64,000 nt of DNA from Piromyces finnis finn (taxonomy: Eukaryota > Fungi > Neocallimastigomycota). Location of the stretch: contig MCFH01000021.1 of the NCBI GenBank assembly GCA_002104945.1, positions 756,239 to 820,238 on the forward strand. The letters are read 5' to 3'. The position numbers and the translations under genes are program-made. The notes beneath the pieces are model-generated. The model was not told where the DNA came from. It saw nothing but the letters and a program-made list of their open reading frames with translations, and searched no databases. The first letter of the stretch is position 1. Each line of letters starts with the position of its first letter. Below are positions 35,401 to 62,978 of this stretch, piece after piece.

Positions 35401-35854
35401 AATGGCTGGTTTAAAGGATGAAAATAATGAAGTTAACAGTAACGCTGCTTACTCTATTGGTATTCTTTGTGAAAACACTCAATTAGATATCTCAAGTTAC
35501 TATCCAGAAATTCTTTCTAGTCTTTCACCACTCTTTAATTCAACTTCTCTTCCACAAACCATTGATAATGCTTGTGGTGCTGTTGCCCGTTTACTCTTAC
35601 GTTATCCAAATGTTGTTCCAATTGACCAAGTCTTACCAACATTCTTTAATGCCCTTCCACTTAAGAGTGACTTTGAAGAAAATGTTCCAGTTGTTAAATT
35701 CTTACAATACTTATTTGAATCTCAAAATCCATTCATTTTATCTAACAAGGAAGGTTTAACCAACTTATTCCAAGCTATGCTCTCTCCACCAGAAAACCAA
35801 TTAAATGATGAATTAAGAGCTATTGTCTTAAAGATGGCCCAATCCCTTCAATAA
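32448..35854 (+). CDS. KAP123: Importin-4 / karyopherin beta KAP123 (HEAT repeats), 5 exons
   Basis: Micro-exon MD (32448-32453), then QQQYLANLEQLLKQVSSPDTNAIKQ|ATEILKQNYF...|IRHIAAVELPKRI...|KIISHAIARCISSM joined to the 923-aa ORF. It has HEAT repeats, two acidic loops and the C-terminal DNACGAVARLL...LPLKSDFEEN motif typical of IPO4/Kap123. Confidence 0.92.
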
Positions 35855-40167: not shown

Positions 40168-40638
40168 ATGAAAAATATATATTTTATAATATCATTAGTA
40201 CAAATAATAACAACTTGTTACGGTAATGTACTTCCTCACTATAATGAGAGTGTAGTTTTTAATAATAATAATACCAATAATGAGAATTCAATAATAAACG
40301 ATAATTCTTATTTACAAAATGTAAGGATATATGATTATGGAATACCTTCAAATTTACAGGAATTATATGATATTCAGAATGGTAATTTAATACCAATGGC
40401 AAAAGTAAAATATATTAATTATAAACAATTTCCAGATTTAAAAAACGTAAAAGGAAAAAATATAGTTTCTCAAAAAGCTTTTAATTTCAATATAAAATCT
40501 GAAAAGAGTCATGAAAGTGAAATTTATGAAAAAGCATTATTGCGTGCTGAGGATGTAATTTCAAAAGCTTTAGGTTAGTATATGTAAATGAAATTTCAAA
40601 ATTTTCTTTTTCAAATTTAAGATATAAATACTTTAGTG

Positions 40639-40689
<51 letters not shown>

Positions 40690-42035
40690 CCTTTTGAATT
40701 ATTGTTATTATTTTAATTATTAATATTATTAATAAAATAAAGATAAATTCTATATAAATTTATATTTTATATTAATATTTAAATTATTAATTTGTTATTA
40801 AAATAATTTAATAATCCTAATAATCCTTTTTTTTTTTATATTTAATTTAATATTATGCAAAAATCAAAGAAATAAAAAAAACAATCAATGTAGATGTATA
40901 TATTGAAGATTTTTGTAATAGCATACAAAGTATTCAGTGTGCGTCATTAGTGGGAATGACATATGCTCCTATTTATATTGCTTTAAAAGATGGTCCAAAT
41001 GAAAGAGAGTATGCTTATCCACAAGCACTTGCCAAACAACTTAACTTGGATAAAGAAATTGAATTTTCAGGTCATGATTTAATTGTATATTTGAATACTA
41101 AAATGGCAAAAGAGGATTATTCTGATCTTATTGTTACCCATGAAATTCTTCATGGCTTGGGAATTATGGGTAATGGAGTTGTTATTGGAAAGAGTATTGG
41201 AATGGACCAAATGGCGGAAGAATTATTTTCACCTTATGTATATTATGATTTTGAAAAAGATGGAGATGAATATAAATATCATTTATTAGGATTCCTACCA
41301 TTTACTATTTATGAAAAATATATTGTTTCATTAAAAGAACCGGATACTTATATCTGTCGTACTGGATTTGATGAATTTTATAACAAATCAGTTAACATTA
41401 CTTCATATTTACTTAATACTAAATCAAGTACAACAGATCAATTTTCAGTATTAACTGATATATATAAAAATATCTATGATAATAATTCTTCTATTGATAA
41501 ATACCGTAAGATTGCAAAACTTTATAAAACCCACAATTCTATTGGTTTTAAAAGTAGTGATGGTGAAGTTATTACTTTACAAACTTTTGATGATAAGTAT
41601 TTATCATCAAGTTCAATATGTCATATTTCTGTTCCATTTGAATGTCATGATTTTGTTTCCTGCTCCTCCGAAAATATGAATGATTATGATAATGAATTTT
41701 TAATGTATTATTCTTATCCGATTCAATTTAAAACAACTGATATGATTAATCGTTTTAACAATAAATATAGTCTTATTGGACCAAAATTAATGAAAATCTT
41801 AACTACTATGGGTTGGACGGAAAAGGGAACGACACAAAATGAAAAAATTTATTATGTAACGAATGATCAATATCCTGATGTTTATAATAACCTTTTCAAA
41901 GTGAAAGCCAATAATAAATTATATGATACCAATAAAAAAGAACCATATCTAATTTCCAAAGGCATAACAATAGATTCACATTTTATTAGTATTATGATTA
42001 TAATCATTTTATCACTAATAATTGTCTATTATTAA
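40168..42035 (+). CDS. Secreted, probably GPI-anchored zinc metallopeptidase, paralog A (HEILHGLG), 2 exons
   Basis: Signal peptide MKNIYFIISLVQIITTCYG. Phase-1 intron from ~40574 (GTTAGT) to AAG at 40867-40869 rejoins as ...SKAL|EIKKTINVDVY. Motifs YAYPQALAKQL, HEILHGLG, GFLPFTIYEK, IGFKSSDGEVITLQTF, SSICHIS, FLMYY and TTMGW. Hydrophobic C-terminal tail. Confidence 0.85.
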
Positions 42036-42279
42036 AAGTAAAAAAAACTTTTTTTTTTTATTTTTTATTTTTTACAATTATATATTATATTATAACAAGA
42101 TAAATTTTATAGAGTTTTTAAGTCAAGTTTTTTTTTTTTTATCAATAATAATATAATTATATTTAAAGTTTTGTAACTACTATTTAATAGTCTTCAAAAC
42201 GTTTTCAATATAAACAAAAAGTAAAATGAAACAACTAATTAATTAAATATAGAAGATATTTTTTATAACTTTTTGATAT

Positions 42280-42320
<41 letters not shown>

Positions 42321-42908
42321 AATGAATTTATATATTCATATATGATAATAAAAGAATAATAATAATAAATTAAAATCAAAACAAAAAAACTATAGGTTAT
42401 ATTATATTTTATTTGCATTATTATTTATTTACAATTTTTTTTTTTTTTTTTTTTTAAATTGTTATTTATGTAAAACCATGATAATTTGATAGTTAAGTGA
42501 ATTATTGTTATATAATATGCTCCAATAAATTCAATATATATATATATTTTTTTGTATATTTATACATTTTGACTTATTTCTTTTCGGTATTAACATTAGA
42601 GAAAGGTGATTTTTCTAGAATCGTTTGCTGGAAAGCATTTCTTTTTTTTTTTTTTAATTATTTTAAATATATATTTAAAAAGTATATATTAGAACATGAA
42701 TTAATAAATTATAGGTTAATAAAGTTTTTATACTTATTTTCTTTACATTGTTTCGTTTAGTTTTCCAATCTTTTTTTTTTTATGTTATGATTTTAATATT
42801 TAATATATATTAATAGATAAAAAAATATTATAAATAAAAGAGAATATTGAGAATATTATTAGTGTATTATTTTTTTTATAATCGTTCTAATTTTTCAATA
42901 TAACGACA

Positions 42909-43570
42909 TTAGATTCTTGAATATTTGATAATTACATTACTAATGATATAATTTGAATCAATTTCTTTTTGTTGAATTAAATTGGCATTCTGATTATATC
43001 TTACTTCAGGATCTTCATTTATATCAGAAAATTTCCTTAAAAAAAAAAAAAAGGTTATTAAAGTAAAACTTTTAATAAAAGAATAATATATTTTATTAAT
43101 ATTGTACATATTATCTTGATTTTTCTTTCCAATATTCATATGGTCAATTGCAAGTTTGATTTGTTGTTGTCTAATTAATAATAAATCATCAAAAATTGAG
43201 TCCGATACTATTGTTTTATAAGAAATTGGTATTAATATTGAAAGTTAAACTCATATGTTCTTTTAATATATACTATAGTGTCAATAAATAAATCTCAAAT
43301 AATTATAATGAAATAAGAAAGTTTTATTAATAACCTGGAAAAATTTTTTGTGGTCCAGATATACTATGTTGAAAATGGGCTAAAATTTTATCATGACAAT
43401 CAATCTATAATGTTCATTTTTATTTAAAAAAAAAACATAAAAGTGTTTATGATAAAGTTGTAAAGTCATTATTTTTTAAAATGTACGATATAAAATGAAG
43501 ACAAACATACTTTATCACCAATATTTCCAGATAAATTCTCAACATTATTTTCCATATTTGATGTATCCAT
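42909..43570 (-). CDS. Small 4-exon hypothetical protein (~120 aa), missed as a whole by the ORF track
   Basis: Hand-spliced with GT..AG and consistent phases: MDTSNMENNVENLSGNIGDK|IDCHDKILAHFQHSISGPQKIFP|VSDSIFDDLLLIRQQQIKLAIDHMNIGKKNQDN|MKFSDINEDPEVRYNQNANLIQQKEIDSNYIISNVIIKYSRI*. Confidence 0.6.
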
Positions 43571-44498
43571 TTTTTATATTTAGCAATTTATTTTTTTTAA
43601 ACTCTAGTTTTTTTTTTTTTTTTTGCCGTCCAAAATATAAGTTCGAATTTAATGGTCAACTATATTAACAAAATAATTATGTATATCGTTATTAATATAA
43701 TAGAATAATAAAAGTTTTAATAAACATTTTTATTAATTTATTAGTTATTTATACATTTATTATATATATAAATAGTTAAAAAATATATGTTTTTATGATA
43801 TTTTACTTTTTTTTTTTTTAATTATTTATATTAAGATATGAATATTACTTATAAAATTTAAAGCTATATTAATATAATGTTTAATAGGATGTTGATGTGA
43901 TTATGAATAATTATAAAAGTAAATGTTTAAAGTATATTCTTTTAATCTGCTTATGAGATACTTGTTCATAATTAACAAGTGCAAAGTGTAATAATAATCA
44001 ATAATAATAACATAAAAAAAAGAGAAGCTAATATATACCTCTATAAAAATTAATTTCAAAATTAGTTTAAACTTTTGTTATTGTTTATATTATATCATCT
44101 GATCTAAATTAGAAAAGAATAATATTTAAACTTTTTATCCACATTTTTTTTTTTATTTTAAAAAAATGCTTTTAATTAAAGTAAATAAAGATGTAGAATT
44201 TAATTAATGTAATGCTTAATTAATGACTTTAATTAAATTTGATAGATTAATTAATTAATATTAAAATTTTATTAAATTTTTTCTTATATAAAAATACTTA
44301 ATTTTTTTTATTTCTTTTTTTTTTTTTACCATTTTATTTTGAAAAAGTTATTATTTCCTACAGACTTATTTCAGAAAGCAACTCTATATTTTTAAAAAGA
44401 GAGAAGAAAAAAAAAGTAATATATGTACATGAATACTAAAAATAAAAAAAAATAAGTAAAATGTTATTATAAAAAATATTAGACGACAATTACCAATT

Positions 44499-47357
44499 AT
44501 GGATATAATTACAATAATAAGAAATAGTTATAATTGCAGATATTGTAATATATCAGCCTTAGATAATTATATAAGGGATAATAAAATTGATTTAAAAGAA
44601 TTGAATAATGAACGTTCAGACATACTGATCAGTATCCTTCAAATTTTTGAAGAATCAAATTTTAAAGATGATTATTATTGTTATAAAGTAGTAAAGTTTA
44701 TTTTAGATCATTGTCAATATAAAACATTAAATTATACTTTTAATTACCGAAGAGAAAACAGATTTCATGTTGGTGATGTTCCTCTTTTTTTTGCATTGTC
44801 AAGAAATAAGTTAAAGGTTGCTGATCTTTTATTAAGTTACGGTGCAGATATTAATTATACTATTAGAAATCACAGACATCATCACATGAATATAATTAGT
44901 TATTTATGTTATATGAATTACTATCATGGCTATCCTTTCCATTCTAACATTCTAAGTTATATTTTAAATCATGGTTTTGATGTAGAAGAAGTTAATCTAC
45001 AATTAATGACGTTTCTAATTTCTTTTAATAACCATAATAAATTAGAAACTATTTTTAAACATTTTATATATGATACTACCTTTATTTTAAATTTTATTTT
45101 CAAATACAAAAATAGAATTCCAATGACTAATCAAGACATTAGTAGTTATATCCTTAAGGCCAAAAGAAAAATAGAAATTAGAGAATCCATGTATGGTGTT
45201 GCATGTTGTACCAATAATTGTGAGGCCGTAAATATTCTTTTAGATTATGATGCTAATATACCAGATACCCTTATTGATATAGTTGAAAAATATAAATTAT
45301 TAACTCGTGCCATCAAAAATAATGATCATAATTTAATTAAAAATATTTTGAATAATAAATCATTTGATGTTAACAGAATTAATTTTGAAGAATATATCAA
45401 AGATATATGTAATTCTTTTTGTAAAGAAAATACGATTGAATGTTTTATTGATATTTTGAAGCAAAAAAAATATAATTTTACCACTGTTGATTTTGAAAAT
45501 ATTTTATTAGAAGTAAGCAGAAAAAGAAATTTATATTTAATAAAATTAATTCTTAAATTATTATTAAATATCAAAAACTTGGATGACCATTGTTTTACTT
45601 TGGATAATTCAATTGTTAAAGGTTTTGATCAACATTATTTAGTTTTAATATTAAATGTTGCTATAAAAATCAATAGTTTGAATTTGGTTAAATTAATATT
45701 AGAAAATGAGGAATTAAAACCTGTAATAGATATAAATAGAACTGATCGAAATAACGAACTTCCTATTATTGTTTCCTATTATTCTACGAAACAGTTTTCA
45801 AAAGGTAGATCCTATCATCCGATAAATATATTTAAATATTTAATAGAAATGGGTGCAAATATTAATTTTAAGGATCAAATGAAAACGTCATTACTTATTA
45901 CAGCAATTCAGGAAAGAGAGTATTTAATTCTTAGTTATTTATTAAAACAAAGCATCCATGTTAATAAAAGAGATATTGGTTCCTATAGCCATCCACTTAT
46001 AAAAGCAATAGGCACTAATAATATTGATATTGTTATGTCATACATAGAAAAAGTTTTCTCGGAAAATAACAAAAAAAATATAGAACATACTGTGGAAAAT
46101 ATTTTTTCTATTACTAGTTGTGATGGTTTCCCTCCATTAATTCTATCCTATTTATTGAATCGTAAAGAGATAACCGATGTTTTAATGAATAGAATTATGG
46201 TAAATACAAAAGATTATTATGGATATAGTCTTATGCACTATGCTATTCTTAAAAGAGATATTAATACAATCAAAATTTTAATTCACCATCAAGCGGACAT
46301 CAATAATGATAAGTATACAAATTATGCCTTAGATACTGCCATCAAAATTCAAGATAAAGAAATATTTTCAATTTTAATGAATTGTGATGATATTGCTGTA
46401 GATCAGCCAAACGAATTTGGTGACACACCTCTATTAACCTTGATTAAAAATCATTTATTACCAGTGGAAGATAAAAAGGAAATGTTAGAACTATTATTAA
46501 AAAAAGAGGATTGTGATATTAATTTCATTGAAAGTAATGACGCCTTTAATAGTGATAATGAAGAGGAAGGAAATACTACACTAATTTATGCTATTATTGA
46601 AGGTCATCTACCAATAATCAAATTATTAATTGATTATGGGGCAGAAATTAATGAAATATACGATAATGGAAATTCGCCTATGAAAGCGGCAATTCAGTGC
46701 GAATCCATTCCTGTAATAGAATTATTAATTAATAATGGAGCTGATATTCACCTTAAAGATTCATATGACGGAACACCATTGATATACGCTATTCTATTAA
46801 CAAAAAATAAAACCAAAGATATAGTAAATTTATTAATTCAACATCATGCTAAAGTGAATGAAGAGGATGTTTATAATAAAACACCGTTAATGTATGCAAT
46901 TGATAATAAATCCTTACCAGTTATTAAACTTTTAGTTGAAAATGGAGCAAATATGAATCATGATAATATCATCTTTACAAAAGTCTTTAAAACAAAAGAT
47001 TTAACTATTATTAAATATTTCATAGAACAAAACATTAGTATTCCTTTCAACAGAATAACAGAATGTTATGAAATAATTAATAAATTTCCTATCGATAAAA
47101 AAATACCAATATTTAAATGTCTCGTTCAAAATAATTCTGATTTTTTTAGTATTAATGTTTTAATAGAAATCATACGAGAAAATCAAATTGAAATTATCAA
47201 ATTATTAATTGAAAATAATTTTAATTTTAATATTAAAGATGAAAATGAAAAGACACCCTTAGATTATGCTATTTTATTTAATCAACAAACCATTGTAAGA
47301 TATTTGAAAAAATATGAAGAAATGCAATCCATTACTAAAAAAAGAAGAATTTATTAA
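44499..47357 (+). CDS. Intronless ankyrin-repeat protein (952 aa)
   Basis: Single ORF with many ankyrin repeats (GDVPLFFAL..ADLLLSYGADIN, GYSLMHYAI, GDTPLLTLI, GNTTLIYAI, GNSPMKAAI, GTPLIYAI, KTPLMYAI, KTPLDYAI). Ends in KKRRIY. Confidence 0.92.
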   Translation: MDIITIIRNSYNCRYCNISALDNYIRDNKIDLKELNNERSDILISILQIFEESNFKDDYYCYKVVKFILDHCQYKTLNYTFNYRRENRFHVGDVPLFFALSRNKLKVADLLLSYGADINYTIRNHRHHHMNIISYLCYMNYYHGYPFHSNILSYILNHGFDVEEVNLQLMTFLISFNNHNKLETIFKHFIYDTTFILNFIFKYKNRIPMTNQDISSYILKAKRKIEIRESMYGVACCTNNCEAVNILLDYDANIPDTLIDIVEKYKLLTRAIKNNDHNLIKNILNNKSFDVNRINFEEYIKDICNSFCKENTIECFIDILKQKKYNFTTVDFENILLEVSRKRNLYLIKLILKLLLNIKNLDDHCFTLDNSIVKGFDQHYLVLILNVAIKINSLNLVKLILENEELKPVIDINRTDRNNELPIIVSYYSTKQFSKGRSYHPINIFKYLIEMGANINFKDQMKTSLLITAIQEREYLILSYLLKQSIHVNKRDIGSYSHPLIKAIGTNNIDIVMSYIEKVFSENNKKNIEHTVENIFSITSCDGFPPLILSYLLNRKEITDVLMNRIMVNTKDYYGYSLMHYAILKRDINTIKILIHHQADINNDKYTNYALDTAIKIQDKEIFSILMNCDDIAVDQPNEFGDTPLLTLIKNHLLPVEDKKEMLELLLKKEDCDINFIESNDAFNSDNEEEGNTTLIYAIIEGHLPIIKLLIDYGAEINEIYDNGNSPMKAAIQCESIPVIELLINNGADIHLKDSYDGTPLIYAILLTKNKTKDIVNLLIQHHAKVNEEDVYNKTPLMYAIDNKSLPVIKLLVENGANMNHDNIIFTKVFKTKDLTIIKYFIEQNISIPFNRITECYEIINKFPIDKKIPIFKCLVQNNSDFFSINVLIEIIRENQIEIIKLLIENNFNFNIKDENEKTPLDYAILFNQQTIVRYLKKYEEMQSITKKRRIY

Positions 47358-48978
47358 AGAATTCATAAACAATATTCTTAATATATATATTTTAAATCCT
47401 TTTTTTTTTTTTTTTTTTTTTTAATAGTATGTACAAACAACTAATTCAAAATAAATAATTTATATTTAATGTAAAGAAATGAAACAAAATATTTTTTCTT
47501 TTGATCTATACATTTTTTTTTTTTTTTGATATCACTCGAAATAATATAATAAAAAAAGAGTAAAATGCAACAATTATTAACTTTTATAATTCCTTTATTA
47601 TAATTTACACTAAACATACTTTTATAATATTAAATACACTTATTTAAAAAATTATTTATAATAAAAGGGATAGGAAAGAAAAGAAAGAAATATAATATAT
47701 ATAATAAATAAGATATGAATAATATGAATGACTATAAAAGTGAGAAATATAAAATTCTTTTTATAGGATATTATCCATTTTAAATTTTTATATAAATTAA
47801 AATTAATATAATTTAATTAATTAAGGATTTAATTTTTTTAAAGATTTTTCACATGTTAAATAAATAAAAAATTTTTTTTTTTATTTCTCCATAATTTTCT
47901 AAAAATAAACATGTGATAATTTGAAGATTTAAAATATTTAAAAATCAATTTTATAAAGAAAAGGAGAAGCAGACAGACAAACTCTGATCTATTATTATTA
48001 ATGGAATAGTAGAACTTGTAAAATGTAACCTTTATCTTTTATGTATAATGAAAGGTGTAAAATAAAAAAAAAATAAAAAAGAAATAATAAAATATTCTTT
48101 ATTATATATATATATATATATATATATTATTCTTATTAATAATGTTATTAGATTATTTAGAAATTTGTATAAAGATTTACATATTGTTTATATCTATTTG
48201 TATATCTACGTGGTGTATATTTATAAAAAAGGAATAATAAAACAAATCTCTAGTTAGACATCGATCAATCAATCAATAATACATATTATTATGACTTTCT
48301 TTATGTGATTTTATATCATTTTCTATAAAAAAAATATTATTTTATTTCAGATTCTTTGTAAATAAGAAAAAAGAAAAAAATAAACTATCATTAATAGAAA
48401 CCCATTTATTAATAAAAAAGGCTTTCATTAATGTTTCCATAAAGAAATGATTTCCTTTACCCTTTATTTTTTAAAAAAAAAAAAAAATCTCCAGATTATA
48501 AATATTTATTTTTTTTAATATAATACATTTATAGTATGCTGTATTTATATTCATAATATATTATAAATTATATATATTATTAATTTATTAAATTAGTTAA
48601 CATCACAAAAAATATTTAAAATAAGATTCTTTTTTTTTTTTTTTTGTTTTTTAAAATTACCTAAAGAAAAGAAGAAAAAAATTTAAAAAAAAAAAACTCT
48701 ATATGAATATAAATCAATTATAATAAAATAAAAAAAAGTAACAAATAACAAATCAATTAAATAAATAAAAAAATAATTAATAATAATACAAAAAAAAAAA
48801 AAAAAACAAAAAATTAAAAAATTAAAAAACCATTTCAAAATAATTTAAATATATACAATAAAATATTTTAAAATTAAATATAGACTTTATATTTAAGATA
48901 TATTAAATATTCAAATAAGAAACAATAAATAAAAATATAAAACAAATAACAAAGCTATATACATATTTAAAAAAAAAA

Positions 48979-51476
48979 ATGCTATCTGAATTTGTTAATA
49001 AATTAACGGGTCTTCCTGTCGATGCATGTGATGCATTCGTTTCTCTTTTCATTGCTATACCTATTGGTGCAATTTATAATAAATTATTCTCTTATATTGA
49101 AATTAATACCAAAATTCCAAAAAATCAACAAAGATTTTATAGATGTCTTTACTCCATTATTACAACTTTGTATTTAATGTGGATGTACCTTGATTGGTTC
49201 GGTATTGCAAACATTTTGTTATCAATTATTATTACCTATGGTTTAATTAAAATATTCAAACCTTCATTTAAGCTTTCCGTCGTTGTTTTTGTTATTAATA
49301 TAATTCACTTATTATTCTGGTATGTATTATTGGCAATTTTCATGATAATAAATAATATTTTAATTCATATTTATGTTAAAAAAAAAACATTTCCATTATA
49401 TGATATCAATAAATAATATGAATACTATTTATTTATATTTATTTATATATATCTTAATAAAAATTTCTTTCTATTCTATTTTAATGGTTATTCTTGTTTA
49501 AATATCTAAAGTCATATTCACAGACAATTTGAAACTGTAGAAAAATTTGATTTTACTTCACCATTTATGTGTTTAGTTATTAAATTAACTTTATATGCTT
49601 GGTCTCGTTATGACGGAACCCAAAAAGAAGAAGTAAGAATTTATAGTGATTTAAATAAATAAACAAACAAACAAACAAAAAAAAAATAAAATTTTTTTTG
49701 TAATATATATGATACAAAAAAATTTAAATCGAATTTATAAAGATAATATTAATAATAAATTCATAGGTGCATATTAATAACATTTTATACTAAAATTTAA
49801 TATTTCAATTTTTTTTATAAAGGATTTATTCAATGCCTATCAAAAGAAGGCTTGTATTAAAAAAGAACCAACATTCTTCGAATTTTTAGCTTATACCTTA
49901 TTCTTCCCTGGTTTCTTTACCGGTCCAGCATGTGACTACTATGAATTTGAAGAAATTTTAAATAAAAGTGTATTTATTATTTTAAATAAATTATATTTAT
50001 AAAATATTGATATATAGTATAATATATAGGATATATACAATAATGCATAGTATGAACAATATTAACAGATAATTTATAATTTTTATCTATTTTTCTTAAT
50101 TAAAATTCAAAATTTTAAATAGTACGCAGAAGAAAAAGAAAAGGAAGGTCAAATGGATGCAGTTAAATCAAAGTTACTTAAAGGATTAATATACACTGTA
50201 ATTTATGTTTCATTTGGCGGTTTCACTTATCAATATCTTATTTCTGAAGAAGGTTTATCCAAACCATTCCTTTACAGGTAAAAACAATTACATGTATTTC
50301 CATTGTATTACCCTATCTATAAAAAATATTTTAAACATTACAAAAAAAAAAAAAAATGTTCATTTGAAATTATTAATTTTAATATTTTTATTTTATTATA
50401 TTTTATATATTCAGATTAATTTATTTAACTATCACTTCTGTCGCTCACCGTTTCAAATTCTATTTAGCATGGACTCTTGCTGAAGCATCTTACAATTTAA
50501 TTGGTATTGGTTATAATGGTGTATCTAAAGGAAAACCATTGTGGTAAGTAAATTATATATGTATAGTTTCTTTTTATTTATCTCTATAACTATAACAATA
50601 GTTTGATACAATTATATTATCATTTAATTTTTGAACCAGTAACAAAACAGACCAAAATTAAAAAAAAAAATATAAAAATTATTATTTAATATATGTTAAC
50701 TATTTTCGAAATTTAACATTTAATAATTTTATTTTTATATCTAAAAATATTAAAGGAATGGTATTATTAATGCCAGTATAAAATTAGAATTATCAGAAAA
50801 TATGAATAGTATGGTTAATCATTGGAATATAAGAACTACTCTTTGGTTACGTCATACTATTTATGATCGTATTAATAAATATTTAGGAAAAACTAGTTCT
50901 CTTATTGGTATTTATGTTGTAGATATTACTTCTGCTATTTGGCATGGTACTTACTCTGGTTATTTCTTAGCCTTTGTTTCTGTTGCTTCTTACAACACCA
51001 TTGTTAAAAGTTTCCGTAAATCAGTATCTCCATTCATTCACGAAAAACACGCTCCACTTCATAAATTCAAACCTATCTATGACATTTTAGGTATTATAGT
51101 AACTCAATGTATTATGAATTTCACTTTTGCTCCATTTATTCTTCTTACTATTGGTGACAGTATAAAACTTTGGAAGAGTTTCTACTTCTTTGTTATTATT
51201 ATTATGTTTATTGCTTTCTTAATCTTAAAACCTCTCGGACTTGAAAAATATCTTTTCCAAAAACAAATTGAAATTTTAAAAATTAATCCCTACAAAAAAC
51301 ATAGTAAACCAATAAAATCAGAAACTTCTGCCACTATAAATCCATCCAATGAAGAAAATGAAAAAATTGCCGCCGAATCTTCAAAGGAAAAAGAAGAATT
51401 AGTAAAGAATGAATCCTCCTCTCTTCTTGAAAATACCGAAAATACAATGAATTTAGAAACTAAAAAAACAGAATAA
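48979..51476 (+). CDS. ALE1: MBOAT-family lysophospholipid acyltransferase (ALE1/LPCAT type), multi-exon
   Basis: Multiple TM segments. Motifs FDFTSPFMCLVIKLT..AWSRYDG, FLAYTLFFPGFFTGPACDYYEF, YFAWTLAEAS..LIGIGYNG, NHWNIRTTLWLRHTIYDR and TSAIWHGTYSGYFLAF (catalytic His). Confidence 0.9.
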
Positions 51477-51720
51477 AAGGGGGGGGGGAAAGTTTTTCAG
51501 TTAAAAAGGGAATATATAATAATTATTATTAATTTATTCACATTTATACTTTTATTATGCACACTATATATTCATGATAGAATTAATATAAAAAAAAAAA
51601 AAAAATCTTTTTAATAACAATATTTAATATTTATATATATTATTTATATTCATATAAAATCAAATAACTCTCATCCTAACTAAAGATTAGTATTATTAGA
51701 TTTTTTTTTTAACTAATTTT

Positions 51721-51757
<37 letters not shown>

Positions 51758-52716
51758 AATGAATATTAAAAAGAAAAAAAAACATTTTACAGTAATAATA
51801 TAATAATTAAACAATATTAATTATTTTGATAAATTCTTTTTATAAATCATTATTATTAATAGGTTTAAATTATTAAAAATATATATATAATATATATTTA
51901 TACAAAAAAAAAAAAAAAAAAAAAAAATAATAATAAAAGAAAGAAAAAAACAATTAAAATATTCAACACTAAAACAACACTTTTTAAATAAAAAAAAAAT
52001 TAAATAATCTAAACTTTTTTTTTATCATCTTTTTAATTATTTATTCATTTTTTTTTTTTTTAAACTTTGTTTTATAATAATAATTATAAATTTTTTTTTT
52101 TTCTTTTTGATTGAGATTGAATGGTATAAAGTAAAAATAATAATAATAAAAACTTTTTTTCAATTATTATTATTATTATTATTAATTATAGAATTGAATA
52201 TAGTATAAAATATATATTAAGTAAAAGGATATATATAATATATATATTTAATAGGAAACTATTTAAAACAATAATGATGGATAAACAAATCTTTTTTTAT
52301 GAATACATTAAAAAAGGATTGTTATTCATCACTTTTTATTTTTATCAATTTATTATAATTATATATAGAGTAATATCATAATATTAAATAATTTATAAGT
52401 ATAGCAATAATAAATGAAAAAAAAAAATAGTTATATATTTGTTAGAAGGATAGGCTTAGATGTAATTGATGCAATTGACTATTTATTGTATATTTCATTC
52501 GATAGGATAAATTTTAATATATTTTATTTTGTTTCTTTTTTTCCATGAAAAAATAATATAAATAGGATAGAATGGATAAGGATAGTAGTGATAGGCAGTG
52601 TAGGAAAAAAAAATATTTATGAGATAGGATGAAATTCTTTCATTTTAATTCCTCATGAAATATAATATATATATCTATAATTTAAAATTATGTTCTTTCA
52701 TTTAATAATGAAATCT

Positions 52717-54540
52717 TTATAGTATAAATGCTATGACTATTATCATTGTATTAATAATAATTATGTTATTGTAAAATGAATATAATGATATTGATGATAT
52801 TGATGATGATCTTGCCTCTTTTGATAAGATGTCTTGTTCAACACTTTTATAATAGAATTCATCTTGTTCTCTTTCGGTCCAACCAATAGTTTTTAGAATT
52901 TTAATAACTTTACTTCCTACAAAACCGTGAGAACTTTCACTTGAAAATCGTTCCACTAACTCATTTACTGATCTTGTAATAATAGTATAGTACATTAAAT
53001 AATTGTCATCCACCTCATTTAACTTTTCTTTTGGAATGAAGCAATCAATTGAAGAATCACAAGCGAAGGGAGCATGAATATGACTAATGCTACTCATTGG
53101 TTCATACTCTTTAAATGTTTGAAGGGTAATAACTTCACCATCATAAGCTTTAAATCCTATTGCTTCCCGGGTAGTAAAAGGTTTTACTAAATGTTTTGAA
53201 TAGGCATGAGTGTTATTTGAAAGTATTTCTAAATTTTCAAAATGATGAATGACATTTTCTTCAGAGGTAAATTTATGAACTTTAACATCTTCCAAGTATT
53301 CTTGTATGCCTTGATGAATATAATAATCAGGATGTTCCATTTCAACAACGTATCGATCAAATACAGTGAATGGAATCCAACCTTTATAGGATTTTTCATT
53401 TCCAGCCCTTGTTCGATAATTATTAGCTAACGGCTGAGGTATTATACGATCTTCTGGAAATGTCATTTTAAAAGCAGCACTTGCCGTCGTCATGAGATGG
53501 AAAAAACCCATACCATGAATGATTTCATGTGTAGCTACAATTAGATAATTTCCATAATTACCTTTTCTTAAATAATCCGTATTAAAATAAAGAGACATAT
53601 CATATGAGGAATAATCTATAGTAATATTATTAAAATCAAATTGTTTAACAAGGGCTTGAGGATAAGAGTAATAGCCTTGATCTGTAATATTTAATGTAAT
53701 AAAACTTGGGGAGTAGGTTAACGCTGTAATATCTGCACAATTATCACTGTTCATACTTTTACAAAATGGAAGAATATGAACATCAACATTAATGGTTTGG
53801 TAAATATTAAATATATTAGAAATGTAATGTCCAGCATTTTCCAATTTATCATTAATATAAATACACTTTTCTTCATCATCCATACATTCTACTATAAAGT
53901 TAAATGGAACATCATCCATTTCATCATCACTTTTTAAGTTTAAAAGGTCATCTTCATCTACATCAATACCATGATAAAATTCAGAAAGGGGTCTACCATT
54001 GTTTTCTCTATGATGATTTTTACAATTTTTGGAGAGCTTATACCGATCAGTGTTGTCGTTATCATTGGGTATTTTACATGAAGATGATGAAGTAGAACGA
54101 TTATGATTACTTGACTTATCGGATAAATCTGTACTATTGTATTCTGATGAATAGGAAGGATACTGGGTATAATTCATGGATTCGTTTGAAATATCTTTAT
54201 CATTTATTTTTTCATTATGAAAAAAAGAAGAAATGAAATTTCTACGATGATAATTTAATTCTTTTTCCTTTTTCTCTAAAGAATATTTTAAGTTTGAAGA
54301 TTGTTGATAATACTGAATATCATTATTTAATATTTGATTAAGACGAGTATTTATATCATCTGCTACATCAGCATAAAATATTTCCGCATAATTAATGTTT
54401 TCATTTTTAAAGGATCTCGCCTTTACTTGACTTGTAAATATTGGTATTGTTGAGTTTTCGATATTAACTATTTTACTTAAATTATAAAGAAGGCATTTTA
54501 CTATAAAAATTACCAATATTTTCCGTATTATTTCTGTCAT
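52717..54540 (-). CDS. Secreted, probably GPI-anchored zinc metallopeptidase, paralog B (HEIIHGMG), intronless
   Basis: 607-aa single ORF. N-terminal hydrophobic leader, Ser/Asn-rich spacer, then PFNF, YSYPQALVKQF, HEIIHGMGF, GWIPFTVFDR, IGFKAYDGEVITLQTF, SSISHIH, YLMYY and KTIGW. Ser-rich linker and hydrophobic tail. Confidence 0.88.
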   Translation of the reverse strand: MTEIIRKILVIFIVKCLLYNLSKIVNIENSTIPIFTSQVKARSFKNENINYAEIFYADVADDINTRLNQILNNDIQYYQQSSNLKYSLEKKEKELNYHRRNFISSFFHNEKINDKDISNESMNYTQYPSYSSEYNSTDLSDKSSNHNRSTSSSSCKIPNDNDNTDRYKLSKNCKNHHRENNGRPLSEFYHGIDVDEDDLLNLKSDDEMDDVPFNFIVECMDDEEKCIYINDKLENAGHYISNIFNIYQTINVDVHILPFCKSMNSDNCADITALTYSPSFITLNITDQGYYSYPQALVKQFDFNNITIDYSSYDMSLYFNTDYLRKGNYGNYLIVATHEIIHGMGFFHLMTTASAAFKMTFPEDRIIPQPLANNYRTRAGNEKSYKGWIPFTVFDRYVVEMEHPDYYIHQGIQEYLEDVKVHKFTSEENVIHHFENLEILSNNTHAYSKHLVKPFTTREAIGFKAYDGEVITLQTFKEYEPMSSISHIHAPFACDSSIDCFIPKEKLNEVDDNYLMYYTIITRSVNELVERFSSESSHGFVGSKVIKILKTIGWTEREQDEFYYKSVEQDILSKEARSSSISSISLYSFYNNIIIINTMIIVIAFIL

Positions 54541-55090
54541 TTGGAGAATTAGTAGAATGACTTTAATAATATAGTATTTATTTAAATTATTGAGTTATAA
54601 CAACAATTATTTACTAAATATGTTTTAAAAAAAATTAGATAATATATATCTAATAATGTGCTATTAATAATTTATAATTATTATTTACACTAATAGTATT
54701 ATTATTATATTGTTAAAAAAATATATATTTTTTTATATTGTATGAAACAAAATTTCATCAATTATAATATTATTATTACACCTTGTTACAATTACTATAG
54801 TATATTTTTATAATATATGTAATGATATTTTTTTAAATTCTTTCATTTTATATAAAAATTTTATTTGAAAATTTTTTTTTGCCTAATATGAAAGAATTTA
54901 TAAGATGAATAATAATAATTCTTTGTGTGATATATATTAAAATAAAGTTAGTACTGAAATTTTACGATATTTTATTTTAACAAAAAATAAATTTTATTTA
55001 TATATAAACTTTATATATTATAAAATTGAAAAAAATATATATATATATATAAAAAGATAAAAAAATTAATTATATAAACATTAAATATTA

Positions 55091-55653
55091 TTACTATTAC
55101 CGATTACTATTACTATTACTATTACTATTACTATTACTATTACTATTACTATTACTATTACTATTACTATTACTATTACTATTACTATTACTATTACTAT
55201 TACTATTACTATTACTATTACTATTATTACTATTACTATTACTATTACTATTACTATTACTATTACTATTACTATTACTATTACTATTACTATTACTATT
55301 ACTATTACTATTACTATTACTATTACTATTACTATTACTATTACTATTACTATTACTATTACTATTACTATTACTATTACTATTACTATTACTATTACTA
55401 TTACTATTACTATTACTATTACTATTACTATTACTATTACTATTACTATTACTATTACTATTACTATTACTATTACTATTACTATTACTATTACTATTAT
55501 ATTACTATTACTATTACTATTACTATTACTATTACTATTACTATTACTATTACTATTACTATTACTATTACTATTACTATTACTATTACTATTACTATTA
55601 CTATTACTATTACTATTACTATTACTATTACTATTACTATTACTATTACTATT
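55091..55653. repeat. (TATTAC)n hexanucleotide satellite, ~93 units
   Basis: Near-perfect hexamer array with two 3-nt slips (near 55225 and 55498). It explains the spurious 201-aa ORF 55081..55686. Confidence 0.97.
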
Positions 55654-58110
55654 ATTAATAATTAATTTTTTTATTATTATTATCATTGATAATATAGCAA
55701 ATAATAAATATGCTTTTGTTAATAAAAACGTATAGTATGATTTACTATTTATTATTATTATATATTCCTATTATTTTTATGGTAATTTTAGTATATATTT
55801 TATATTTTTTAATTTCTTTTTATATTTTCATTCTATATGATTACATGATGTATTATTCTTATATAGAATATAAAATTGAAATCTACTTCTATTACCTTCA
55901 ACACTATTTAAACTAAACAAACTTTTGTTATCTTTGAATACTAATTACTATTTTTATTTTTAAAGTTATTTTTTTCTTTTGTATATATATATATATATAT
56001 ATTTTTTTAGTGATAAAAAAGTGACTGTTACATATATTTTTTTTTCAAAAAACTAAATAATACTCTAAAATAAAATATAATAATTAAAATATTATTTATT
56101 AATACCTTTTAGTTTTTATTTATTATTCTTTTTTTTAGTTATTAAAAAAGGAAAGAAAGAATTTCGTTTTTCAATTACAAATAAACATTTTTCGTTATTT
56201 ATATATTTTATTTTTTTAAAGAAGAAAAATAAAATCTTTTTTTTTATTCCTTAATATTATTTTTTAAAAAATTTAATTTAAAGAATTTATTAAATTAAAT
56301 CTAATTGAATAAATAAATTAAATATATTTTTTGATTTATTTAATATATGTAGTAATAATATTCATTCATAAAGATTCTAGATAGTAAATGATAAAAAAAA
56401 AAAACTTTATGGTATCAAGAATTCTTTTTTTTTTTTATGTATTTTAATTCTAATTCTAATTATTATGTATTTTTATCATTGTTACTATTATTACTTGGGA
56501 TTAGTATTGGTATTACCATTTGACTTTATAATAATTCAATAGAGTAATATATTATCAATTCTTATTCTTTTTTTTATTTTAAACTTTTATCAATATTTAA
56601 ATGTTGTTTTATTTTTTTTTAGATTCAAAAAAATTGAATTCCTTTTTTTTTTTAAGGAGAATTTCTTTTTAAAAAAATTATTTTAGATAATTTCAAGGGT
56701 TAATTTTTCCTTTTTTTTATTATTTCTTGATGATGGTAACCATAAATTTTTTTATCCTTTTTTTATACTATAAACAATATCTGATTTCTCCTATTACCAT
56801 ACTCATATATATTCTATATAGTATCTTTTACTTTTTTCATATAAAAAAAATGATTTCATATTGTTGATTTATGCATTTTTTATCAAAGGGTAAACTAAAA
56901 AAAATTAAACTATTATTATTATTATTATTTAAATAGTCCTATAATACTATATAATATAAATATAATAACTACTAATTTTCATTTAGAGATACCTATTAAC
57001 TATTTAATCTAGATTTCTTATAAAAAATATCCTATTAAATACCATTTTTTCATGCTTTTAATTTTGTATTGAATTACTTTTAAAATATATAATCCTAGAT
57101 AAAATTGATAATGACTTTATTATTACATTCTTATTACTCTATTATTATTCTATCACCATTATTATTCAATTCATTATTACTTCAATCTTTACTAATGTCA
57201 TCGTCATCATCCCTTAGCACCTACCATATAGAATATAGATAAATATTATTTTTTAAACTCTTAAATGTCTACATGGATGATAATGCATAGAATATTCAGT
57301 GTAGGGAATAATGAAATTTTTATGGTAAAATGGATAAATTAAAAAAAAAAATTAATATATCCAATAATAATTAAAATAAAATCATGTAATATATTATAAT
57401 ACATTGTATTATATTATATTAAATATTTTTAATTTATTTTTTTGATTTTGTACGACCTTAATAATTGCCAAAAGAATTTTTTATTTTTATTTGATTTGAA
57501 CCTTTCACAAAAATTTATTTTTAATTTATTTTTGATGTTTCATATTTTTTGTAAATTATTTGACATTTTATTTCAATTAATTCATTTAAATTTAATATAT
57601 TAAATAACATATAATAAAATATACATTAATTAGGCATATTTTTGTCATATTTTTTGTAATAATTAAGGATAATCGAATAAGATTCATTATATAATAATAT
57701 TATATAATAATATTAATAAAAAAAAATGTTATAGTAATAATAATTAAAAAAAAAAAAAAAGTAAATAAACCACCAAAAGAGTGTGAGGAAAAAAATTGAA
57801 ATCTTGATAGTATTAAATGAAAATATAAAAAAATATCAAGAAAAAAAAAAAGTATAAAAATTAATACGTAAAGATAGTAAAGTATTTAAAAACTATCTAA
57901 AAATCTAAAAACGACATTATTTTTAAATAAATTGGTCATTATCCAATAATAAAAAAAAAAGGGATAATTTGAAAATTATTTCAATATTTTATTAGATATT
58001 GTATATAAAAATATAGTAATAATAATAAATTATAAATAATAAAAATAGTAATATAATAATATAAATAAACTATCAATCTATAAACAATAGATAAATAAAT
58101 TTATAATAAA

Positions 58111-59808
58111 ATGAAAATTTATATATTTCCATTTCTGTTGTATATATTATTAAATTTAAGTTTATGTTATTCAGAATTAGTTATAAAAGAATATCATTTA
58201 AATTCAAAACATATTAGTCATGTCGACGGTTGTAAAAGAATAGATAATGATGATAATTTTCTTGTAACAAAGTATACCACAGTAGATAAAAAAAATAAAC
58301 AAAAAAGAGATAGAACTCCTTTAACTGAGCCCTTTGAAGTAACTTTTAATTATACTACTGGTACAAATGAACAATGGGAAATAATCAAGGAAAGTGTAAA
58401 TTATGCTAAAGAATTATTCAATTCAATATTTGGTAATAAGATTATAAATACTATTATTATTATTTTCTATTTTTTTTTAATACTTTATAATGATTGATTT
58501 ATATAAATATATGAATATATATATATATATATATATTTTTTTGTTTAAAATGATTTATTATACTTTCAATAATTTTTGATATGTATTCATACTAACTGAA
58601 TTATTATCTTTTTTAAAATTTATTAAATAAAAACTAAATTTTATTAATATATTATTGATAAAGATTTTTATACACCAATTAAAATTTTACTACAAATAGT
58701 TAATAGTGTGGAGAATAAAATAGCATTTACTGAACATGCAGTGTATTATCAATTAAAAAAACCAAATGAAAAATATGGATATTCCTATCCTGCACCCCTC
58801 GCAAAACAATTAATAACAGACATTCCAATTGATTTCGAAAAGAATCGTCAACATGATATTATAATTACATTTAATGGACGTAGTGTTGTAAGAAAAAATA
58901 ATTTAACTCCAACAATGGTTCATGAGATGCTTCATGGTTTTGGATTTTCTTCACTAATAAAAAGGGTTTTAAATGGTAAATTTTATAATGATGCTCCATC
59001 ATTTGGTAGAGAATATTATATGCCAGATATATTAACAATTGGTGATAAAGATACTGGAATGAAAGTAATTAAGGGATTTCTCCCAATTAATGTTTATGAA
59101 AAGAATTTTGTTGATATTGCAAATAACAATTATTATTTTGATGATTCTTTTTGTAGTATTACTGATATTGATCTTAATTATGAGATTCATGATCCACCAT
59201 ATTATTCTGAAAAGGAAAAGTTACAAGATCTAACTTCATATGTAGAGAGTTGGAGTGGAATGCAAAGAGGTATCAATCTTTATGAAAAAAGCCATCAACC
59301 AAAATCTACTGCCTTTAAAACAAAAGATGGAAGGCTTCTTTATGTTTGTACTTTTTCTAAATCGGATAAACCAGACTTCAATCATATTTGCTCACGTAAT
59401 ATGGTTTACGAATCCGAAGACGTATATAATATTGAGGCTGAATATGACGAAAATTTTGTTATGCACCCTTATAATATTGGTTTAGCTCTATCTAACGAGG
59501 AAAAAATACAAAAATATGGTAATGGTAAAACCATTGGTTTACTTAGTGAAGATATTATTAGTGCATTAGAAACAATGGGTTATCATAGAAAAGGCACTCC
59601 CCAAGATAATACCCAATATACTGTTGTTACCCAAGTTGTTAATACAGCACATACCTATATTGATGGCCATTTTGTTGATGATGGAACTTCAAATATAAAT
59701 CAAGTAATACAAGAAGAAGAAGAAGAAGATGGAGCTTTTTCTCTTTCCTATCCATCTTTAATTTATATTTTATTCATTACACTTTATTCCTTTATTACCC
59801 TTTATTAA
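58111..59808 (+). CDS. Secreted, probably GPI-anchored zinc metallopeptidase, paralog C (HEMLHGFG), 2 exons
   Basis: Signal peptide MKIYIFPFLLYILLNLSLCYS and a KR dibasic site before PFEV. Phase-1 intron from ~58432 (GTAATA) to AAG at 58661-58663 rejoins as ...NSIF|DFYTPIKI. Motifs YSYPAPLAKQL, HEMLHGFGF, GFLPINVYEK, TAFKTKDG, FNHIC, FVMHP and ETMGY. Hydrophobic tail. Confidence 0.85.
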
Positions 59809-61090
59809 ATATAACCAAATTAAAGAAATATAATATATACCTATAAAGATATAAATAGTTATACAATAAATGAAAGAAAGAAAGAAAGAAAGAAAAAAAA
59901 AAAAGATAAAATGAAGAAAATAAAAAAGAATAAAAAAATAAAAATAATAATATAAAAAGATAATGAGATAACAAATTATCATTGGACTTTTACCTAATTT
60001 ATTAATTAGAAAAAAAAAATTATTAATAATACAATATAAAACGAAGTAAAAGTAAAAAGAGTAAAAGAATTTATAAATGTTGAATAATTGAATCTTTTAA
60101 AAGAAAAGGTAGATTAATAAATTAAAAAAAAAAAAAAAACATATTATCGTTTTAAAAAACTGAAATATAGTTTTTTTTTAAATAAATAGGATGAATAAAA
60201 ATGAAAATAATTATAAAAAGTTAGGTATAGATTAGAATATCAAGTATAAGCTCCAAATTAAATTTCTAATAATATTATTATTATAATAATAATAAAAAAT
60301 GAAATATCTATTTAATAAATAAAAGAATTAATATTTTAGAAATGAATAATTGTATATTTGATGAATAAACGAGTAAGGTATTATTGTTTTCATAAACTAT
60401 AAAAATGGCATACATGCATATTTGATTAATCTTCAAAGGTATAACATTGTTAAAATTATAAAAAAAAATGGGTATTTAAAGCAAGTAAAAAAATACATCT
60501 TCTAATTATTGTGATAATTTTAAATTTTTTATATTATCAATTCATTTATCAATTCTATTTAATATTCAATATATTACTATATATAATTTAATATATAATA
60601 GTATATTATATTTAATAATAAAATCAATTCTTTCACAATATATTTTATTTTTTAAAATTTACTTTCTGTATAAATAAATTTTATTTTTTATAATTTTTTT
60701 TATTGCCATAAAAATATTAAAAAAAAAAAAAAAAGAAGCAAAAATTTCCCTTTAAAGTAAATTAAATTAATTTATCATTACACAATCAAAAAATTAAAAA
60801 GTTTAAAAAAAAGTAAAAAATGTAATTTGAAATCCTTTTAAAAATTACATTGAAATCCTTTTAAATTCCTTAATAATAAAAAGGAAAAGAAATAAAAAAA
60901 AATAAAAGCATTCAATAAAATACGGAAACAACAAGCAACTTTAATGAAATAAAATAAATAAAACATAAAGTAAAAGCAAAACATAACAAAATCAAATAAT
61001 AAAATTAAAAAAAAAAAAAAAAAAATACATGAATTGTATTATAATATAATATCTTTTTAGCCAATAAATATTTTAATATAATTACAAAAA

Positions 61091-61526
61091 ATGAATATAC
61101 TATCACTTATAATTAGCAACCTTTATATCATAGTAATATGGTTATGCTTTAATATTACTATTATTGTTCACGCATTTAATAATGATAATGTTGTTCTTGG
61201 TTTTATACCTTCTGAAATTGAAACTCATGGTATTAATGAAAGTTGTTCTCACCTTCATAATAAAAATTCATATCAAATAAAAAAATTTAAAATTGATATA
61301 GGAAATGACAAAAATAAAAATAGTATAACTTCTTTATTTTCAAAATTTGCAAAGTATATTGTTGGACAATCGGAAGAAGAACAAAATAATAACCAAAATC
61401 AAAATTTCATTGCTTTGGAACAACCTTTTGAAGTTGTTTATCAATGTGATTGTGATGATATTTATTGTGAAAGAATAAAGGATTCTTTTGAAAAAGTTCC
61501 TGGATATTTTACAAGTGCATTAGGTT

Positions 61527-61572
<46 letters not shown>

Positions 61573-62978
61573 GAAATTTATTTATAATTAATTTGAGTAA
61601 AAAAAAAAAATAAATATATATTATGCATTAATGTATTATAATTTGCAATTCCATATGAATAATAATAATAATAATAATAATAATATTTTATTTTATTTTC
61701 CAAAAAAAAAAAAAAAATAAAAAATAAAAAAAAGATATCTATAGCGCAATAAAAATTCGTTTAAATATTTTTTCTTTTTCTCAATCTGAAAAAAGGAAAA
61801 ATTCAACTGCATTAGCCATTACATCTCCACCACCCTATATAATTCTTAAAGATTCTGAAAATGGATGGCCTTTTTCTTATCCATACACTCTAATAAAACA
61901 GTTAAATACAAATATAAAAATTCAATATGATTCCAATATCACAGACTATGATATTAACATTGATATAAATACAGATCAAATGATGAATGATAAATATTTT
62001 ACTAGTATGCTAGCTCATGAAATTCTTCATGGTATGGGAATTTATTATATAATTAAACCACTTTCAAAAATGATACCTGATTTTGAATTTAGTCCTGAAC
62101 TAATAATGCCGCCTATAGATTATAATGTATATGAAAATGAAGAAGGAATTTTAAAAGAAATAAAAACTTTTCTCCCACCATCTATTTATGAAAAAAATTT
62201 TATAAATTTGGAAAAATTAATAAAGAATAAGGATTCCAATGATACCTCTAATTTTGTATCTCCTGATTATTATTTATTTAATGAAGATTATTATTTAGCA
62301 TTTAGGGATCTTAAATTAAAATATTATATTCATCAACCGATGATTGATGACTCCGAGAAAACTCAACTTCAACAGTTTAATGAAACCCTTTTTCATTGGA
62401 AGGGATATTCTATTGCTCATAATTTCTATAAATCCGCTACTTCTGAAAATGGTATTGGATTTTTAACCAACGAAGGTGATATTATTAAACTTCAAACTTA
62501 CAATAATGAATATTCTGGTGACTTTTTCCATGTCAGTACACCATATCATTGTGAGTCAATATCCAAATGTAGTATTGAAGATGAAACAGATCATCATCTT
62601 TTAAAATATGGTCCAAATTTCGTTATGCTTTCAAAATACTATGTATTTGATATGACTGTTGAAGAAAAAATTGAGGCATTTGCACCAAATAATCGCTATG
62701 GTCTTCTCGGAGATGGAATTGTACATATGTTAACTACGATGGGTTGGACAGAAAGAAATAGTACTAGAAATAATAAGAATTATATTGTTCTTAATTCAGA
62801 AGAATTAGAAAATCTACAAATTGTGGGACCAGTTCATCCAAACACTATAGAACTTAAACTTGATCATAATCAAAGTTTATTTTCCCTTATTTCTTCAGAT
62901 TCTAATATTTCATTCCAATATACTCCATTAAAATGTATCATTTTAACCTTAGTACTTACCATTATCTTTTTATTTTAG
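61091..62978 (+). CDS. Secreted, probably GPI-anchored zinc metallopeptidase, paralog D (HEILHGMG), 2 exons
   Basis: Signal peptide to ~IVHA. Phase-1 intron from ~61524 (GTTAGT) to AAG at 61732-61734 rejoins as ...TSAL|DIYSAIKIRL. Motifs FSYPYTLIKQL, HEILHGMG, TFLPPSIYEK, IGFLTNEGDIIKLQTY, FFHVSTPY, FVMLS and TTMGW. Hydrophobic tail. Confidence 0.85.

Follow-up and report, generated by a model that had tools for sequence, protein, structure and literature searches.

A 64,000-nucleotide stretch of contig MCFH01000021.1 of the anaerobic gut fungus Piromyces finnis (assembly GCA_002104945.1, positions 756,239 to 820,238; hereafter the window) carries four paralogous genes, g1 to g4. With a probability of about 0.7, their products are metzincin-type secreted zinc metallo-endopeptidases, most likely tethered to the cell surface through a glycosylphosphatidylinositol (GPI) anchor, and belong to a distinct, unclassified family of early-diverging fungi whose layout resembles that of leishmanolysin (GP63, MEROPS family M8). 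Peptidase activity, zinc binding and surface location are predicted properties that all four proteins probably have, judging from their sequences and from a structural model. A first-pass annotation of the window had listed four paralogs, each with an N-terminal leader, an HExxHGxG motif, a distal His followed by a Met, and a C-terminal tail of hydrophobic character, and all of these elements were recovered in each of the four genes (Table 1). The same annotation had interpreted them as a repertoire of cell-surface proteases of the M8 type. The part of this interpretation that stood is a set of paralogous, secreted-type, zinc-peptidase-like HExxH proteins sharing an invariant distal His, while membership in M8 did not. 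Searching each gene against the whole window with tblastn gave exactly four copies, which were 23-33% identical to each other over about 300-370 residues (E-values of 5e-9 to 2e-49), a mutual similarity far above chance.

In g1-g4, the first His of the HExxH motif was separated from the distal His by 149-171 residues, and the distal His from the Met by 26-32 residues. In an alignment of 102 family members, the first His and the Glu of HExxH were each conserved in 101 sequences and the second His in all 102. The distal His was also present in 102/102 members and was the only other invariant His; it was followed by a Met in 93 members and by Leu or Ile at that position in eight. An Asp in the strand preceding the active-site helix was likewise found in 102/102. 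At the canonical third-ligand position of metzincins, 76 members possessed Ser or Thr and nine possessed His, and the contiguous motif HExxHxxGxxH/D is thus not the rule in this family. The spacer between the motif Gly and the distal His ranged from 124 to 195 residues (median 141.5), and the distance from the distal His to the Met was 13-14 residues in fungi from outside the gut and 20-66 residues in the gut-fungal clade. The domain contained 3-6 cysteines. In g1 (protein P0011), no Cys was found between the leader and the catalytic sheet, and this protein consequently has no cysteine-switch candidate in its propeptide.

Under the proposed mechanism, zinc would be held by the two His of HExxH together with the invariant distal His, ahead of which a large, beta-rich subdomain (124-195 residues) would be inserted. 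The general base would be the Glu of HExxH, and the conserved Met would lie beneath the site as a Met-turn. Such an arrangement of the zinc site is otherwise a hallmark of leishmanolysin (M8).

An AlphaFold model of g1 (P0011, residues 45-470), obtained with the 102-sequence alignment, reached a predicted local distance difference test score (pLDDT) of 92.2 and a predicted template modelling score (pTM) of 0.93. It superseded a first model based on a 13-sequence alignment (pLDDT 64.7), for which Foldseek had returned weak matches to matrix metalloproteinases (MMPs). The order of secondary-structure elements in the final model was as expected of a metzincin. Against the PDB, Foldseek matched this model to MMPs only, with E-values of about 1e-2, and an exhaustive aligner was needed because these matches were weak. 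Among the 48,161 representative chains compared in this way, the first rank was taken by leishmanolysin (1LML; Z 11.7, root-mean-square deviation 3.9 Å, 187 aligned residues), with residues 53-412 of the model lying on residues 103-373 of the chain, a match confined to the N-terminal and central domains of leishmanolysin. Ranks 2-4 were MMP-2, MMP-12 and MMP-9 (Z 10.1-9.6, 140-144 aligned residues; Z 10.1 with 140 residues for MMP-2), and MMPs overall spanned Z 9.3-10.1. Lower ranks included snapalysin, serralysin, adamalysins/ADAMs, fragilysin, archaemetzincin, astacin, ulilysin and pappalysin, and the list down to a Z of about 5.5 consisted mostly of metzincins, with YbeY and Wss1 also present. 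As the matches were mostly metzincins, the predicted fold is that of a metzincin, and the solved structure nearest to the model is leishmanolysin 1LML, by a modest margin. A structural comparison with leishmanolysin had been proposed as a check in the first-pass annotation, and the top rank of 1LML agrees with what had been expected. Language-model features placed Peptidase_M8 as the second-nearest named cluster and a cluster containing M10 as the third, with scores of 0.85 that are to be read as leads only.

A shape search of the ESM Atlas retrieved orphan Mucoromycota clusters (template modelling (TM) score 0.71) without a Pfam family for the catalytic part. Other matches were bacterial (TM 0.53-0.57 altogether): proteins of Bacteroidota and Rhodothermota with a type IX secretion system (T9SS) tail (TM 0.56-0.57), and an actinobacterial fn3 family sharing the predicted fold, none of them with a peptidase Pfam family. 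These bacterial clusters may be an unannotated counterpart of the fungal family, to the extent that predicted shapes can tell.

At the sequence level, none of the Pfam and NCBIfam models scanned matched g1-g4. Peptidase_M8 (PF01457 / IPR001577) was found neither in these four proteins nor in 93 relatives at E ≤ 0.01, and it was absent among the families listed for 102 relatives in Pfam at E ≤ 10. Sub-threshold matches in that same set were to Matrixin (M10, PF00413) in 22/102 members, with a best E-value of 0.0011 and centred on the HExxH helix, and to Astacin in 5/102. When the family profile was compared with all PDB sequences, MMPs appeared at an E-value of about 0.1 and 1LML at 0.79, both at the HExxH helix only. 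A sub-profile restricted to the distal-His, Met and C-terminal helices matched no peptidase in the PDB, 1LML included, and a phmmer search of g2 against PDB sequences gave noise only. Judged by sequence, the proteins form a zincin- or metzincin-like family of their own and not a part of M8, because PF01457 is unmatched, 1LML is met at the HExxH helix only and the profile of the distal part is empty. The earlier assignment to M8, in the form in which it was written, is not borne out.

A first sequence search had retrieved relatives from anaerobic gut fungi only, none with precomputed Pfam domains. As the family scans left the identity of the proteins open, an exhaustive profile search with the domain alignment was carried out, which yielded 484 cluster representatives at E ≤ 1e-3, including 44 at E ≤ 1e-30. 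Thirty of the 484 were looked up individually, and all those bearing a name were fungal: Neocallimastix, Anaeromyces, Piromyces and Pecoramyces, the chytrids Hyaloraphidium, Nowakowskiella, Polyrhizophydium and Kappamyces, and Glomus cerebriforme. Most were labelled 'hypothetical' or 'sequence orphan', and many lay on contigs of 1.3-2.5 kb, the size of transcripts. Orthologs of g2, with identities of 51-74%, were found in Piromyces sp. E2 and on transcript-sized metagenome contigs. The family is not peculiar to gut fungi, since chytrids and Glomus also have members. The presence of the family in these aerobic chytrids and in Glomus also disfavours, weakly, horizontal transfer from rumen bacteria as its origin. 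A literature search for leishmanolysins, metzincins or metalloproteases in Neocallimastigomycota, chytrids or anaerobic fungi found no paper describing the family, in line with the earlier remark that it is not known to have been characterised in gut fungi.

All four proteins possessed a hydrophobic N-terminal leader and, at the other end, an uncharged hydrophobic stretch stopping 0-2 residues from the C-terminus, with runs rich in S/G/A/N about 8-12 residues upstream of it. Most orthologs shared these features. By simple hydrophobicity criteria the C tails of all four genes are GPI-like, as had been claimed for them, and GPI anchoring of g1-g4 is somewhat favoured on these sequence features. 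Under the same simple rule, a hydrophobic C tail was present in 18/34 gut-fungal representatives and 30/63 others. Elsewhere in the family, the gut-fungal relative P0019 ends in a chitin-binding (Chitin_bind_1) domain, and a gut-fungal subclade of 16 members (P0031-P0047) has long acidic C-terminal tails in place of the hydrophobic one. This variety of tails (hydrophobic, acidic, chitin-binding) fits a family at work on the surface of the wall or membrane, in which attachment modules can be exchanged for one another.

Several observations count against g1-g4 being surface-held proteases of a separate metzincin family with an M8-like zinc site. Leishmanolysin 1LML lay outside the Foldseek top 50, and its lead over MMPs in the exhaustive alignment was modest (1.6 Z units, with some 45 residues more in the alignment). 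The roles of the distal His as third zinc ligand and of the Met as Met-turn are inferred from invariance and from the alignment ranges only. Within the g2 subfamily the third ligand is ambiguous, because a His is also found at the canonical metzincin position: the nine members with this His all belong to that subfamily, including the orthologs P0002-P0009, and g2 itself has, besides the invariant distal His, the full canonical motif HEIIHGMGFFH at 53497-53529. The C tails were called with a home-made hydrophobicity rule, so that hydrophobicity is the sole property behind these calls. This last point would suit a C-terminal stretch that is a transmembrane anchor (type I, without a cytosolic tail) or is simply retained, and not a GPI signal, which is a possible but lesser explanation. 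In stop-transfer anchors the helix is usually followed by basic residues, whereas the stretch here runs to within two residues of the C-terminus and nothing charged comes after it. The small-residue runs upstream of it have the usual form of a GPI signal, and sister subclades swap the tail for an acidic tail or a chitin-binding domain, as interchangeable modules would be swapped.

The lead of 1LML among the 48,161 comparisons, in which no MMP came within about 45 aligned residues of it, also bears on whether the family could be a true, very divergent M8, with an insert and distal His homologous to those of leishmanolysin and with the C-terminal domain lost. The identical order of HExxHxxG, long insert, His and Met points the same way, as does, as a lead only, the second place of Peptidase_M8 by language-model features (0.85). 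This origin is nevertheless doubtful: among the listed families at E ≤ 10 PF01457 appears in 0/102 members against 22 for Matrixin and five for Astacin, the family profile meets 1LML at the HExxH helix only (E = 0.79) and the distal-part profile does not meet it at all, the insert is 124-195 residues long against about 62-71, there is no third domain, there are 3-6 Cys against 19, and g1 lacks a switch cysteine. The complete HExxHxxGxxH of the g2 subfamily would fit a distal His that is merely structural, with the third ligand elsewhere (the canonical +10 position, water or Asp) and an M8-like layout that is only apparent. With Ser/Thr at the canonical position in 76/102 members and His in only nine, and with the distal His as the sole other invariant His, followed by a conserved Met and C-terminal helices as in metzincins, this is unlikely. 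It is more unlikely still that g1-g4 are non-proteolytic, whether as adhesins, pseudo-enzymes or hydrolases of non-peptide substrates. YbeY and Wss1, metzincin-like folds in the structural list, do have other substrates or work in other settings, but the best structural matches are all extracellular endopeptidases, and the two motif His, the Glu and the distal His persist in 101-102 of the 102 members from different phyla, which would be unexpected for pseudo-enzymes.

The descent of the paralogs was examined with a maximum-likelihood tree of 101 members (with Shimodaira-Hasegawa-like approximate likelihood ratio test (SH-aLRT) support). The gut-fungal sequences formed one clade (support 100), within which g1-g4 fell into four different supported subclades: g1 with Neocallimastix P0012 (support 99, 67% identity), g2 with Piromyces sp. 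E2 P0002 and others (support 100), g3 with P0022, P0026, P0027 and P0028 (support 100), and g4 with its closest relative, P0014 of Anaeromyces robustus (support 100, 60% identity). The g3 and g4 subclades were sisters (support 98), and at least three further gut-fungal subclades had no member in the window. According to this phylogeny, g1-g4 are four subfamilies predating the split of the anaerobic gut-fungal genera. Recent tandem duplication was ruled out as their source, because each paralog clusters with sequences of other genera. The old and retained expansion proposed in the first-pass annotation is supported by the cross-genus orthologs that each paralog has, and synteny around g1 and g2 agrees with it.

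The gene models are given in Table 1. The window has a G+C content of about 18%, and the exon junctions were read from the DNA sequence and then verified by script. The joined g1 product showed full identity to P0011 (BCR36DRAFT_412442), an annotated protein of P. finnis, and the joined g3 product to the database protein P0013. Transcript-type contigs from four public runs belonging to three studies covered g3 and g4. For g4, these contigs carried 17 letters between 61515 and 61744, which equal the 8 + 9 exon letters predicted by the 61523/61735 junction. Since the transcript contigs match both junctions, g3 and g4 are expressed, and their splicing follows the gene models.

The introns of g1, g3 and g4 share a common alignment position and a common phase (phase 1). 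In contrast, neither g2 nor its ortholog in Piromyces sp. E2 (L001 10001-11869) has an intron, which suggests that the g2 lineage lost it long ago or, possibly, went through retroposition. The g2 protein also contains a low-complexity insert, located after the N-terminal segment. Pure poly-T runs were observed inside two of the introns, one of 50 nt in g1 (40640-40689) and one of about 38 nt in g4 (61529-61566), the latter beginning directly after the GTTAGT donor. In one run (X1), the g3 transcript lacked 6 nt at 59711, close to the stretch of Glu codons that precedes the C-terminal tail, and had T in place of A at 59733. These differences resemble variation between strains or alleles, located in the linker that leads to the putative anchor signal.

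Table 1. Coordinates of the four metzincin-like genes, their zinc-site motifs and neighbouring genes (positions in the window; ORF, open reading frame; aa, amino acids).
Feature	Position	Strand	Details and evidence
g1	40168-42035	+	523 aa; two exons
g1 exon 1	40168-40573	+	Signal-peptide-like leader and N-terminal segment; ORF; donor GTTAGT at 40574
g1 intron	40574-40869	+	Phase 1; position and phase equal to those of the g3 and g4 introns
g1 exon 2	40870-42035	+	Catalytic domain and hydrophobic C tail; ORF, motifs
g1 HEILHGLG	41139-41162	+	
g1 distal His387 (ICH)	41622-41624	+	
g1 Met414 (FLM)	41703-41705	+	
g2	52717-54540	-	607 aa (P0001); no intron; ORF, tblastn
g2 HEIIHGMG	53506-53529	-	
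g2 distal His487 (ISH)	53080-53082	-	
g2 Met516 (YLM)	52993-52995	-	
g3	58111-59808	+	488 aa; two exons
g3 exon 1	58111-58432	+	ORF; transcript contigs join 58432 to 58664
g3 intron	58433-58663	+	Phase 1, GT..AG; skipped in transcript contigs of 4/4 runs
g3 exon 2	58664-59808	+	Includes hydrophobic C tail; ORF, motifs
g3 HEMLHGFG	58921-58944	+	
g3 distal His348 (FNH)	59383-59385	+	
g3 Met374 (FVM)	59461-59463	+	
g4	61091-62978	+	558 aa; two exons
g4 exon 1	61091-61523	+	ORF; transcript contigs cover 61059-61515
g4 intron	61524-61734	+	Phase 1, GTTAGT...AG; sequence reading, transcript gap consistent
g4 exon 2	61735-62978	+	Includes hydrophobic C tail; ORF, motifs
g4 HEILHGMG	62016-62039	+	
g4 distal His410 (FFH)	62529-62531	+	
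g4 Met442 (FVM)	62625-62627	+	
Importin-5-like HEAT-repeat gene	33083-35854		
Ankyrin-repeat gene	44499-47357		952 aa
MBOAT-type membrane acyltransferase gene	48979-51476		Intron-split

The four genes form a loose cluster, with the ankyrin-repeat gene and the MBOAT gene lying between g1 and g2. In N. californiae, the g1 ortholog follows an importin-5-like gene, as g1 does in the window, and in Piromyces sp. E2 the g2 ortholog adjoins an MBOAT gene, as g2 does. In Piromyces sp. E2, the 10 kb around the g2 ortholog contained no ortholog of g3 or g4, and for this reason the four-gene arrangement is not presented as conserved. Between g2 and g3, a compound microsatellite of about 600 nt (55081-55686) reads as a 201-aa ORF, (NS)n then (IV)n, which is an artefact of the simple repeats. 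In Anaeromyces robustus, two members with near-adjacent accessions, ORX64980 (P0024) and ORX64983 (P0173), share one contig of 44,752 bases, and the family is therefore also clustered in another genus. The P0173 model, which is 1271 aa long and bears the name 'periplasmic binding protein-like II', is possibly a fusion of gene models.

A broader proposal, on which we are evenly divided, is that these proteins constitute a new metzincin family meriting its own MEROPS and Pfam entries. Its fungal origin would be ancient, with a range from chytrids to Glomeromycota and Mucoromycota, and it may have T9SS-secreted bacterial cousins. As in M8, the third zinc-binding His would come after a large inserted subdomain, and the family would be either the long-sought sister lineage of the leishmanolysins or an independent reinvention of their layout. 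In gut fungi it would comprise at least seven subfamilies with interchangeable attachment modules (GPI signal, chitin-binding domain, acidic tail). Candidate biological roles are remodelling of the wall or surface, processing of surface proteins and scavenging of protein in the rumen. Curated libraries miss this family, although it comprises hundreds of sequence clusters in early-diverging fungi bearing a full catalytic signature. Its recognition would give the biology of rumen fungi, whose surface and zoospore proteins have hardly been explored, a further class of probable cell-surface proteases, and would bring the same gain for chytrids and arbuscular mycorrhizal fungi. As a second lineage with a leishmanolysin-type split zinc site, it would also help to ask whether this layout arose once or twice. 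The advance would be a new family within a well-known clan, of use in annotation and in tracing how the split zinc site evolved, and not a new mechanism.

Among known systems, MMPs (M10) share the metzincin catalytic fold with the present family and provide its only recurrent weak Pfam signal (22/102 members). They differ in having their third His within the contiguous HExxHxxGxxH, where most members here have Ser or Thr, and in having no counterpart of the insert of 140 residues. The Mucoromycota, Bacteroidota and Rhodothermota clusters of the ESM Atlas resemble the family in predicted fold over most of the domain, in a comparison of predicted structures only; the bacterial proteins carry Por_Secre_tail or fn3 modules, and not a hydrophobic tail.

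The closest parallel in layout is leishmanolysin/GP63 (MEROPS M8, PF01457, 1LML). Leishmanolysins have been described as set apart by a large insertion that separates the Gly from the third His, with a spacing of 71 residues in one group, 19 conserved cysteines, a propeptide and about 25 C-terminal residues that are replaced by a GPI anchor (PMC11957388). The present family departs from this description in an insertion about twice as long (124-195 against about 62-71 residues) and in having 3-6 cysteines against 19, with no propeptide cysteine in g1. It also departs from M8 in the distance from the His to the Met, which is 13-14 residues outside gut fungi and 20-66 within them. The Cys-rich C-terminal domain of M8 is missing, g1-g4 ending about 50 residues after the Met, plus the linker and tail. 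There is also no detectable M8 sequence signal, and the taxonomic range here is fungal. The earlier comparison with GP63 was accordingly correct in part: it does not extend to sequence signal, spacer length, C-terminal domain or cysteines, and it holds for the HExxHxxG motif, the far distal His, the Met and the best structural match, 1LML. A GPI signal is typical of GP63, although M8 membership does not require one. Both systems combine HExxHxxG with a long insertion, a His and then a Met, both have a signal peptide, putative in g1-g4, and a hydrophobic C-terminal stretch, and both are encoded by several paralogs in one genomic neighbourhood.

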